Shown here: one piece after another, positions 26,399 to 29,327 of the stretch
How positions within the stretch are numbered: position 1 is the first letter of the stretch
Layout of the letters: each line of letters begins with the position of its first letter
Assembly (NCBI RefSeq): GCF_006345805.1
Contig: NC_042999.1
Coordinates: 100,006,001-100,070,000, forward strand
Source: Octopus sinensis
Taxonomy: Eukaryota
DNA length: 64,000 nucleotides
Reading direction: 5' to 3'
The notes under the pieces: model-generated
The model's input: only the letters and a program-made list of their open reading frames with translations
Databases searched by the model: none
Told to the model about the DNA's origin: nothing
Position numbers and translations under genes: made by a program

Positions 26399-26868
26399 CA
26401 TGTAGGGACTGCACAATGAATTCCATGCAGCCACAACAGAAGTTGCTGGAAAAACTAGGTGGGATTGGCTTATGAAAGGAACACTGCAAAAAGAAACCGA
26501 GAGCACTATACTGGTAGTGCAAGACCAAGCTTTGGAAACGAACTGGAGTGTCAACCTTAGGAATGAGCAAGTGTCTCCGCTGTGTCGCATCTGCAACAGG
26601 ATGGATGAATGCATAGCCCTAGACTTGCCCAAAATCACTACAATTTGTGGCGAGACGATCAGGTAGCTGAAGTGCTACATCGGAAACTATGCGAAATATG
26701 GGGGCTAGACAGGCAAGGTGTGGTATGAGCAGGAACCGCAGAGAGTGGCGGAGTCGGAGACTAGCAAAATCCTCTGAGATTTCCCAATCCAAACAGATCA
26801 GGTGCTAGAGAATAACAGACCGGACCTAGTGGCGATGGACAAGATTCTCCACATATGTTATATAGCTG
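26399..26868 (+). mobile_element. R4/Dong ORF C-terminal fragment, part 1 (CCHC knuckle and start of the restriction-like endonuclease)
   Basis: WDWLMKGTLQKETESTILVVQDQAL, SPLCRICNRMDE, degenerate RHDQVAEVLH, WYEQEPQRVAE, DFPIQTDQVLENNRPDLV. Confidence 0.9.
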
Positions 26869-27704
26869 TATGTATATATATATATATATATATATATATA
26901 TATATATATATATATATATATATACACACATACACATGTGTGTGCATGTATGTATACACATTCTGTAATTCTTTTAGTTTCTGCTCCTTTCTCTTTAAGC
27001 CTCTTTATTCAAATCATAAATTTGGGATAAACCACAATTTTAATTTGTGAACGTGCTTCCGTTTAACTTTAAAACCCCATGTATGCGATATTACCTAAAA
27101 TGTTTAATTATCCATTCAGAGGATATTGCTATAATTAAACTGCGTTTATAATTATCATTAAATTAGAACTTTCATTTAATAAACAATTATAAATACCCAT
27201 CACACTATCATCCTCATCATCATCGTCGCCATCACCATCATCATCATCACTATCACCGAAGGATTATTATTAATTTTGATTTCAATCAATCCTTGCAGGA
27301 TTTGAGTGGGTTGCGGGTAATCTTAGGTATTCACTATCTTTCAGTAATCTTTCAAGTGCTTAGAAGCCATCTGATAATCTTTCATATTCCTCAAAGGTAG
27401 ACTTTCTGTAGAAGCTCTATATGACATTCTATTCCAATTTCCTTCAACCATTTGCCTGTCTTTGCTTAGAGTTCCCGATGTACAAATTCTTCTTCTTCTT
27501 CTTCTTCTTCTTCTTCTTCTTCTTCTTCTTCTTCTTCTTCTTCTTCTTCTTTTTTTCTTCTTCTTCTTCTTCTTCTTCTTCTTCTTCTTCTTCTTCTTAT
27601 TATTATTATTATTATTATTATTATTATTATTATTATTATTATTATTATATTATTATTATTATTATTATTATTATTATTATTGCGTGAGAGACAGTGCATA
27701 CCAC
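26867..27704 (-). repeat. Left arm of a near-identical inverted duplication (partner 28482-29327)
   Basis: It reverse-complements to 28482-29327. By eye I found one substitution and one 1-nt indel in about 550 bp of non-repetitive sequence; microsatellite lengths differ between arms. Confidence 0.97.
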
Positions 27705-27732
27705 ATTGGGAAATCTCAGAGGATTTTGCTAG

Positions 27733-28072
27733 TCCAAACAGATCAGGTGCTAGAGAATAACAGACCGGACCTAGTGGTGATGGACAAGATTCTCCACATA
27801 TGTTATATAGCTGATGTTGCATGCCCCTTTGCCCCACGAATAGTCAAGAAGCAAGGCGAAAAGCTAAACACAACCCTCTTCAGTACGAAATATCCCGACT
27901 ATGGAAAATTAAGGTGAAAATAGTCCCAATTATTGTTGGGTTCTTGGGAACAGAAAGCATCAAGGGGAATATAAAGGAAATGGGATTAGAGTGCCCAGTA
28001 GAACTGTTACAAAAAGTTTGCCTCCTTGGCACGGCCAGAATAATCAGCAAAGTATTAGAAATAATGAAATAA
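27733..28072 (+). mobile_element. R4/Dong ORF C-terminal fragment, part 2 (RLE PD..D motif to ORF end)
   Basis: RPDLVVMDKILHICYIADVACPF, LQYEISRLWKIKVKIVPIIVGFLG, LLQKVCLLGTARIISKVL. The first 81 bp duplicate 26788-26868. Confidence 0.9.
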
Positions 28073-28307
28073 TGAAATGAAATAATGTTGATATATATCA
28101 GTGTCCATACTGAAATAGGTAGTTTCTACACAGAAGGTCAACATTTCCATCAAGTTTCTTATTGGTATACTAGTGCGTTTTATTAGATGGGTGTCTGTCA
28201 CTAGTTTTTCTCGTATCACTGATAGTGCTTCACCATTTGGGACATCTTAGATCATATGACCATTTGATCATGTTACCTTATTCAGGGACCTACTCGAGCT
28301 ACTCGAC

Positions 28308-28503
28308 TTGAAGAAAATTCTAACTGGGCCCCACTTTCAAGGTCATGCGCTGTTTATCTTGTCATGATATCACCATGTCGCGCACATATATTTGTGATGC
28401 ATGTGCCTAGTGTACCCTTATGAGATAGGTAGTCAGGCGGGGTATACTGGGTTTGGTATATTTTATCTCAGTGTCACTTTGGTGGTATGCACTGTCTCTC
28501 ACG
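28308..28503 (+). mobile_element. 3' end of a further non-LTR family with (AAT)n tail
   Basis: gaagaaaattctaactgggccccac...atcaccatgtcgcgcacat...gcactgtctctcacgc is followed directly by (AAT)n. The family assignment is from memory of octopus repeats. Confidence 0.55.
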
Positions 28504-29327
28504 CAATATAATAATAATAATAATAATAAGAAGAAGAAGAAGAAGAAGAAGAAGAAGAAGAAAGAAGAAGAAGAAGAAGAAGAAAAAAGAAGAAGAAGAA
28601 GAAGAAGAAGAAGAAGAAGAAGAAGAAGAAGAAGAAGAAGAAGAAGAAGAAGAAGAAGAAGAAGAAGAAGAAGAAGAAGAAGAAGAAGAAGAAGAAGAAG
28701 AGAAGAAGAAGAATTTGTACATCGGGAACTCTAAGCAAAGACAGGCAAATGGTTGAAGGAAATTGGAATAGAATGTCATATAGAGCTTCTACAGAAAGTC
28801 TACCTTTGAGGAATATGAAAGATTATCAGATGGCATCTAAGCACTTGAAAGATTACTGAAAGATAGTGAATACCTAAGATTACCCGCAACCCACTCAAAT
28901 CCTGCAAGGATTGATTGAAATCAAAATTAATAATAATCCTTCGGTGATAGTGATGATGATGATGGTGATGGCGACGATGATGATGAGGATGATAGTGTGA
29001 TGGGTATTTATAATTGTTTATTAAATGAAAGTTCTAATTTAATGATAATTATAACGCAGTTTAATTATAGCAATATCCTCTGAATGGATAATTAAACATT
29101 TTAGGTAATATCGCATACATGGGGTTTTAAAGTTAAACGGAAGCACGTTCACAAATTAAAATTGTGGTTTATCCCAAATTTATGATTTGAATAAAGAGGC
29201 TTAAAGAGAAAGGAGCAGAAACTAAAAGAATTACAGAATGTGTATACATACATGCACACACATGTGTATGTGTATATATATATATATATATATAATATAT
29301 ATATATATATATATATATATACATACA
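28482..29327 (+). repeat. Right arm of the inverted duplication (probable source copy)
   Basis: Reverse complement of 26867-27704; contains (AAT)n, a long (GAA)n tract, an R4 3' end, (GAT)n and (TA)n. Confidence 0.97.
28714..28928 (+). mobile_element. Decayed R4/Dong ORF end and 3' UTR (inverted duplicate at about 27270-27487)
   Basis: Reads KWLKEIGIECHIELLQKVYL*GI*KIIR, homologous to the EMGLECPVELLQKVCLLGTARII end at 27980-28050; AAT tail. Confidence 0.75.

Follow-up and report, generated by a model that had tools for sequence, protein, structure and literature searches.

The subject of this study is a stretch of 64,000 nucleotides from Octopus sinensis (RefSeq assembly GCF_006345805.1, contig NC_042999.1, positions 100,006,001 to 100,070,000 of the forward strand), referred to here as the window, and in particular a small rearranged locus within it. 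At this locus the relic of a retrotransposon is interrupted by 945 bp (26869-27813) made up of copies of sequences that lie close by, namely an inverted copy of 0.85 kb whose source is found 1.7 kb farther downstream, and two short local copies. The locus was defined by direct reading of 26500-29600, a repeat finder, local alignment and self-BLAST of the window, and the order of segments obtained in this way is w-X-B'-w'-X-C-B, in which B' and w' are the inverted copies. The features are listed below in window coordinates.

26406-26868, plus strand: upstream part of the host, a decayed retrotransposon C-terminal open reading frame (ORF) with in-frame stops, ending in ...KIL, a stop and DFPIQTDQVLENNRPDLVAMDKILHICYIA
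26759-26788, plus strand: w, 30 bp, in the ancestral orientation, encoding the conserved KILWDFPI motif
26789-26868, plus strand: X, first copy, 80-81 bp, with the CpG kept at 26833
26867-26868: junction 1 (J1, between X and B'), TG, a 2-bp microhomology
26869-27704, minus strand: B', the derived inverted copy of 28482-29331, with (TA)26 at 26869-26924, (TTC)n at 27487-27598 and (TTA)n at 27597-27681
27704-27705: junction 2 (J2, between B' and w'), microhomology 0, both sides compared with both donors
27705-27734, minus strand: w', the derived inverted copy of 26759-26788, its copying beginning at reference position 26788
27733-27734: junction 3 (J3, between w' and X), TC, a 2-bp microhomology, the direct copy picking up at reference 26788-26790
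27735-27813, plus strand: X, second copy, with TpG at 27778 in place of the CpG of the first copy
27814-28481, plus strand: C, the remainder of the host element, with about 410 bp of 3' sequence after the end of the ORF
28469-28494, plus strand: small predicted DNA hairpin at the border of C and B, -4.9 kcal/mol, z = -2.8
28482-29331, plus strand: B, the ancestral donor arm, with its unique core at 28714-29272, (TAA)7-8 and (GAA)~63 at 28505-28713, and (TA)n(TACA)n at 29273-29345

Each of w, X and B is present in two copies, and two of the copied pieces are inverted. According to the self-BLAST, the sources of all three copied segments lie within 2.6 kb and the donors are still in place; since the donors are retained, the sources are so near and the pieces are inverted, the rearrangement appears to be a product of copying and not of cut-and-paste. 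The insert may be parsed as B'-w'-X or, equally well, as X-B'-w'. The inverted arms, of about 840 bp, pair 26867/9-27704 with 29331/29-28482 and flank an interior of 777 bp (repeat finder). No other pair of repeats in the window approaches this one in length or similarity, the runner-up being 228 bp at 88%, and no further copies of w-X-C or of B are found within its 64 kb. An initial annotation of this DNA had proposed the order w, X, inverted B, inverted w, X, C and B, which was recovered at, or within 4 bp of, the positions given there; the B of that annotation (28482-29327) is right at its start and too short at its end, as the right arm reaches 2-4 bp past 29327. Also borne out were the duplication of X with one mismatch (26789-26868 against 27734-27813, 1 mismatch in about 80 bp), the inverted copy of w (26759-26788 against 27734-27705, complementary at 30 of 30 positions, E = 1e-9 for the window alone), and the (GAA)n tract and (TA)n end of the copied arm, both of which were located in the arms.

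The polarity of the change is given by the host element. Deletion of 26869-27813 joins ...PDLVAMDKILHICYIA to DVACPFAPRIVKK..., and when 26868 is joined to 27814 by script and translated, the product reads ...KIL, a stop, DFPIQTDQVLENNRPDLVAMDKILHICYIA and, across the joint, DVACPFAPRIVKKQGEKL.... The restored joint, ICYIA/DVACPF, aligns without gaps to seven homologous proteins and has invariant residues on either side, in agreement with the earlier proposal that removal of these bases restores a continuous reading (CYIA/DVACPF). Past the joint, the host ORF continues as DVACPF..., suffers one frameshift, and goes on as ...ARIISKVLEIMK to a stop, ending at 28072. In a protein search, the relatives of the restored ORF show 39-54% identity, and the homologues carry matches to zf-RVT that are below threshold; no Pfam domain was found on the fragment of the host ORF itself. 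The host, with its in-frame stops, is the decayed C-terminal ORF of a dead retrotransposon. Because removal of the insert restores a gap-free frame, and because the conserved KILWDF motif is encoded by w in the left, direct copy only, w-X-C(-B) is the ancestral order and the 945 bp are the derived insert.

This collinearity bears on one way of accounting for the inverted arms B' and B, namely as the long terminal inverted repeats (TIRs) of a foldback-type or TIR DNA transposon with w'-X-C as its cargo. Inverted arms of 840 bp around an interior of 777 bp do have the outline of such an element. However, the interior X-C carries on the w-X reading frame of the left flank, no target-site duplication (TSD) is seen, neither between the end of the left flank, ...TATAGCTG, and the start of the right flank, CATACATACAAG, nor on comparing 26861-26868 with 29332-29340, and there are no further copies within the window. 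A transposon of this type, rejected for its missing target duplication and for the collinearity of flank and interior, is hardly credible here.

The nature of the host suggests a second account, based on RNA: a read-through transcript of the locus would have undergone target-primed reverse transcription at a nick in X, with an internal jump, an inversion resembling twin priming that gave w', and a TSD of 81 bp. The host is itself a retrotransposon, the insert parses as a reversed (w+B) between direct copies of X, the start of the insert in a (TACA)n/(TA)n microsatellite could serve as a 3' tail, and the w'/X geometry is what twin priming is said to produce. Against this stands the distance of 2.4 kb between source and target in a genome of reportedly about 2.7 Gb, which is wildly improbable for a passage through RNA. 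Moreover, B lies downstream of the ORF and of its probable (TAA)n tail, so that a read-through RNA is required; the 81-bp duplication is far above the usual length; the host copy is riddled with stops; and no second copy of B or of the element is present in the window. Twin-priming retrotransposition was rejected in view of the absence of direct TSDs around w'-X-C, whose flanks are B' and B, inverted and not direct, and the whole account is very improbable.

The ends of the copied segment are marked by repeats. B extends from the inside of (TA)n(TACA)n to 23 bp past (GAA)~63(TAA)7, and both of its ends are at most 25 bp from a microsatellite, a placement shared by about 1% of random 850-bp segments of the window. 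Long tracts of GAA or of TA are fragile and hinder replication, and the placement of the ends of B fits an involvement of structure-prone repeats. At the border of C and B, exactly where the inverted copy ends, lies a hairpin of the form CAGTG...CACTG with an inner CAC/GTG stem; as a hint only, this structure predicted at 28469-28494 may have marked the place where the synthesis copying B came to a halt. Nothing significant was found in a search for hairpins at w or at the end of X, and in the ancestral sequence as reconstructed the switch points are without an inverted repeat, 2-bp microhomology being all that is shared there.

The junctions themselves bear on the mechanism. Two junctions with 2-bp microhomology, TG and TC, had been put forward in the initial annotation, and both sequences are indeed there, although they argue weakly for a mechanism: with random blunt joining modelled as P(k) = (k+1)(1/4)^k(3/4)^2, two or more of three junctions would carry at least 2 bp by chance with p of about 0.07. 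A further point is the double use of one reference position, 26788/89, from which the w' copy starts (at 26788) and at which the direct copy resumes (at 26788-26790). If the switches were independent, with their targets spread over 200-2600 bp, such a coincidence is estimated at about 0.2-2.5%. The double use points to synthesis that ran off the end of a strand or to a palindrome whose centre later underwent a deletion, and J2 reads as a blunt join or as a deletion joint.

In this sense, the earlier attribution of the locus to template switching of the fork stalling and template switching (FoSTeS) or MMBIR (break-induced replication mediated by microhomology) type was right as to the class of mechanism and needs correction as to three independent switches, given the lack of microhomology at J2 and the position used twice. 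In its strict form, FoSTeS would be a single event in which one nascent strand makes three independent switches, with no run-off and no secondary deletion. Three junctions, nearby donors, an inversion and 2-bp microhomology at J1 and J3 are all present, and the pattern agrees with the published description of FoSTeS/MMBIR. Nonetheless, J2 is devoid of microhomology, so annealing could not have primed it, and the start of w' at 26788 coincides with the point of resumption in a way that independent switches would rarely yield. We regard this strict form as quite unlikely.

The explanation that we favour, with a probability of roughly 0.6, is that the locus carries a real, lineage-specific and non-functional structural mutation, produced by microhomology-primed synthesis with template switches, of the MMBIR/FoSTeS or synthesis-dependent end-joining class. 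Structure, polarity, retention of donors, junction sequences and association with microsatellites are all visible at the locus, and from them we infer the enzymology, the number of steps (one or two) and an origin in the germline. The synthesis would have strayed from its proper template and copied nearby sequence of the opposite strand, priming by the 2-bp microhomologies (TG at J1, TC at J3), and the microsatellites (TA)n(TACA)n and (GAA)~60(TAA)n would be the likely points at which aberrant synthesis started or stopped. Given the double use of 26788/89 and the absence of microhomology at J2, two models, A and B, are favoured over three independent switches.

In model A, everything would happen in a single event that begins with a staggered break, with ends at 26788/89 on the bottom strand and at 26868/69 on the top strand, whose 3' overhangs of 81 nt would account for the duplicated X. 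The left 3' end would prime by TG in (TA)n(TACA)n and copy B backwards, while the right 3' end would prime by GA/TC 30 nt inside the other end, copy the 30 nt of w and run off the end of the strand at 26788; both extended ends would then be joined blunt at J2. In model B, a first step with two switches would yield w X / B' C' X' w' / X C B, a miniature DUP-TRP/INV-DUP (an inverted triplication between duplications) in the form of a palindrome with arms of 1.6 kb and a spacer of about 30 nt, and in a second step a 749-bp deletion of C'X' from the stem/loop boundary would stabilise the palindrome. A more specific version of this last scenario takes the locus for a germline footprint, either fixed or segregating, of a microsatellite-triggered inverted triplication, followed immediately by a stabilising deletion exactly at the stem/loop boundary; it is a tentative proposal, and on balance we doubt it.

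The age of the event may be judged from the differences between the copies. BLAST aligns the inverted arms at 95.3% identity over 852 columns, and the loss of identity is confined to the microsatellites. Across the unique core of about 560 bp (26927-27486 against 28714-29272) there is one substitution, A against T at 27365, and a single-base indel in a T run at 27145; one further change stands at the edge of a microsatellite, at 26925. The sole difference between the copies of X is a CpG to TpG change at 26833. Overall, the unique parts show 2 substitutions and 1 indel in about 670 bp, that is, about 0.3% substitutions. The arrays are another matter. The left arm has (TTC)21 T5 (TTC)14 (TTA)17 TA (TTA)10 and the right arm, in the same sense, (TTC)4 TC (TTC)37 T4 (TTC)7 T (TTC)11 (TTA)7 TA, and the (TA) arrays are (TA)26 and (TA)12 T (TA)11, respectively. 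The T run and the TA interruptions common to both arms show that the arrays descend from a common ancestor; several independent slippage steps lie between them. Because the microsatellites of the arms differ, a few point changes have accumulated and X shows a CpG to TpG change, the copies appear to be distinct molecules or loci with mutation histories of their own, and not one read sequenced twice.

As a yardstick, window positions 1-14589 are collinear with the Octopus vulgaris assembly GCA_951406725.2 (OX597816.1:104747061-104767417, here L001, at its positions 4403-20357), with many small indels and 1.0-1.6% substitutions; this comparison covers the first 14.6 kb only and ends 12 kb short of the rearrangement. 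The arms are about 4-5 times less diverged than the two genomes, and for this reason the event probably took place after the split from the lineage of the O. vulgaris assembly. Accordingly, the description 'very young' given in the initial annotation is apt relative to the 1.0-1.6% divergence from O. vulgaris, but the event would not be brand new, with about 0.3% substitutions and remodelled microsatellites, unless these differences were made by error-prone synthesis or are errors of the consensus.

The same differences are relevant to the suspicion that the inverted copy exists on no chromosome and is an artefact of assembly, due to a chimeric long read or a mis-traversed graph, perhaps with mixed haplotypes. 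This is the only pair of long, near-identical repeats in the window, the differences between its arms (about 0.3% substitutions, a homopolymer indel, microsatellite lengths) are of the order that heterozygosity or errors of the consensus would give, and regions rich in microsatellites assemble poorly, tandem repeats being 7% of the window. Yet chimeras from fold-back or missed adapters yield a perfect palindrome (w' w X) with identical arms, and here the centre is w'/X, there are three distinct junctions, and the arms differ in the architecture of their microsatellites; a simple fold-back chimeric read was rejected on the grounds of that centre, which is not w'/w, and of those arrays. False duplications of haplotypes are normally direct and located at contig joins, and the window has no N; in addition, it agrees with the independent O. 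vulgaris assembly across the 14.6 kb compared. An artefact appears unlikely.

Several points weigh against a templated mutation as proposed here. The junctions are read from the assembled sequence, and their presence in real molecules is presumed. The arrays of the arms differ by many repeat units, yet the unique sequence is 99.5-99.7% identical, and this mismatch would call for microsatellites that evolve fast, for an event whose synthesis was very error-prone, or for errors in the consensus. Microhomology exceeds chance only weakly, with 2 bp at two junctions and 0 at the remaining one, and the exact switch point at J1 is ambiguous, as it falls inside a (TGTA)n/(TA)n array. Finally, models A and B look the same at the level of sequence, and each has its cost: model B would need two events, and model A would need the invasion of a duplex with 2 bp of homology.

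With regard to its meaning, the rearrangement looks like a neutral scar left in a retrotransposon that is dead; it has no evident function, and neither a gene nor an RNA family nor a regulatory feature is associated with it. A search of 24-32 kb gave no Rfam match, the window has no predicted tRNAs, and the region holds no ORFs other than those of the dead element and the translations of microsatellites. It looks like a further case of a mutation of known kind, such as the copying or repair of DNA ordinarily leaves behind when it is prone to error. Its value lies in being a clean, base-resolved, complex templated insertion, in which long (GAA)n and (TA)n tracts border the copied segment, and in the double use of one reference position, which constrains the mechanism to strand-end run-off or palindrome revision. 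If such events are frequent in the microsatellite-rich genomes of cephalopods, they would be a source of new inverted repeats, of potential hairpin-RNA loci and of fragile sites, and also a warning for the quality control of assemblies. If the two-step course were true, the locus would be a sequence-resolved case of the natural birth and revision of a palindrome in a cephalopod, and would suggest that the microsatellite-rich octopus genome often produces such events.

As to the surroundings of the locus, the window has 33% GC and no N, and tandem repeats with a period of at most 6 make up 7% of it. A reverse transcriptase (RT) fragment at 4.5-5.1 kb shows 98% identity to an annotated O. vulgaris protein. 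An 841-bp stretch present in O. vulgaris (L001 8882-9723), where it is part of a jockey-like RT ORF and includes a called gene of 167 aa, is absent from the window at 4491-4499; on the side of the window the two alignment blocks share 9 bp, an overlap suggestive of an indel that arose between short direct repeats. Exact look-ups of 14 ORFs of the window, including those that span the junctions, gave no match, and the search with the restored retrotransposon ORF returned the relatives mentioned above and no independent copy of the locus. A protein search with 35 concatenated ORFs from 19-35 kb, aimed at annotated O. vulgaris genes no more than 10 kb from the site, found none, and w had 0 exact matches among the metagenome contigs of JGI.

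Just upstream of the host element, an 80-bp module with an (AAT)n tail occurs twice (25879-26009 and 26318-26396, 78% identity), and a 180-bp piece with (AAT)n at 26055-26234 recurs in inverted orientation at 47933-48111 (88%); the AAT-tailed modules are probably the 3' ends of elements with a (TAA)n tail. Remnants of one Tc1/mariner-like DNA transposon lie at 21242-23000, with inverted repeats of about 220 bp (21242-21457 and 22129-21914, 80%), an ORF similar to helix-turn-helix proteins at 21674-21877 on the plus strand and pieces of a DDE-like ORF at 22451-22915 on the minus strand. The second-best repeat pair of the window is inverted, too, and is found at 32304-32531 and 32897-33115 (228 bp, 88%, with about 365 bp between the two). 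Among the tandem repeats, very long (TA)n arrays, with 90-140 units, are located at 24278-24555, 31401-31641, 38358-38584 and 38808-38983, and another 9 arrays measure at least 100 bp, including (TGA)61 at 35374-35557. There is also a dispersed family similar to short interspersed nuclear elements (SINEs), with copies of about 70-140 bp at 76-91% identity on both strands, in which ARAGORN finds no tRNA-like gene:

7960-8166, 30073-30169, 30580-30735, 34745-34881, 41217-41314, 47360-47476 and 56145-56282, both strands: SINE-like copies

Several known systems resemble the locus in part. The model of LINE-1 twin priming, reportedly due to Ostertag and Kazazian in 2001, deals with 5' inversions. 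In a similar way, w' (inverted, from upstream) abuts X (adjacent, from downstream) with 2-bp microhomology; unlike in twin priming, there are no direct TSDs around w'-X-C and its tail, the inverted arms B' and B stand in the place of flanks, and the source is the target locus itself. Inverted triplications of the DUP-TRP/INV-DUP kind are said to have been described by Carvalho et al. in 2011. With C'X' conceptually restored, the locus would have the same layout, w (2x), X (3x, the middle one inverted) and CB (2x), reached through two switches. As it stands, however, X is present only twice, both times direct, there is no X' or C', and a later 749-bp deletion has to be assumed; in addition, the classical cases use kb-long inverted low-copy repeats at one junction, whereas here both switches have a microhomology of only 2 bp. 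The DUP-TRP/INV-DUP structure arises by iterative template switches (Grochowski et al., 2024; PMC11293582).

At breaks in yeast, inverted templated insertions of 5-34 bp are completed by non-homologous end joining (NHEJ) with a median microhomology of 2 bp, and paired inverted insertions derive from one fragile locus (Yu et al., 2024; PMC11724301). Model A, in which one end is extended by synthesis and the other is captured by NHEJ, would be a hybrid of the sort found in that study. Likewise, w' is a 30-bp inverted copy adjoining the presumed break, of a length inside the 5-34 bp given there, as in templated insertions and in the snap-back of the synthesis-dependent microhomology-mediated end joining (SD-MMEJ) or DNA polymerase theta (Pol-theta) type (PMC11724301; Yu and McVey, 2010; PMC2943611), repair would have been completed at a junction with 0-2 bp of microhomology, and the long insert comes from a nearby, microsatellite-bounded and presumably fragile region. 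In contrast, a tract of 0.85 kb and a flanking duplication of 81 bp exceed the typical insertions of break repair, and the template of w' is the other side of the break and not a fold-back of the same end as in SD-MMEJ snap-back.

A short spacer makes a palindrome unstable and subject to revision by centre-break, as far as the work of Cunningham et al. (2003) is reported in PMC3300023. Under model B, the palindrome would have arms of 1.6 kb, and the deletion would begin 0-2 nt from its stem/loop boundary and enlarge the spacer from about 30 bp to 777 bp, an asymmetric stabilising revision like those of that account. The palindromic intermediate is nonetheless hypothetical at this locus, and its spacer would have been wholly kept, whereas in centre-break as reported there the centre is usually removed. 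Fold-back inverted duplications (Hermetz et al., 2014; PMC3907307) share with the locus their inverted arms, a short single-copy spacer and little or no homology at the junction, although those cases are terminal, with a distal deletion and a dicentric intermediate, while the locus is interstitial and has both flanks intact.

A further parallel is with MMBIR, a model in which microhomologies of 2-5 bp, inverted segments and synthesis of low processivity are expected (Hastings, Ira and Lupski, 2009; PMC2621351). The locus departs from the MMBIR/FoSTeS pattern in its scale (<1 kb against kb to Mb), in its one blunt junction, in the double use of one reference position and in the lack of pre-existing low-copy repeats, and an origin at a replication fork is here circumstantial, suggested by the ends of B at microsatellites. 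Nonetheless, it shares with that pattern three junctions of nearby segments, an inversion, the retention of donors and, at a level weakly above chance, 2-bp microhomology at two of the junctions; its endpoints adjoin structure-prone repeats, and its tracts of 30 nt, 81 nt and 0.85 kb suggest a synthesis of low processivity.

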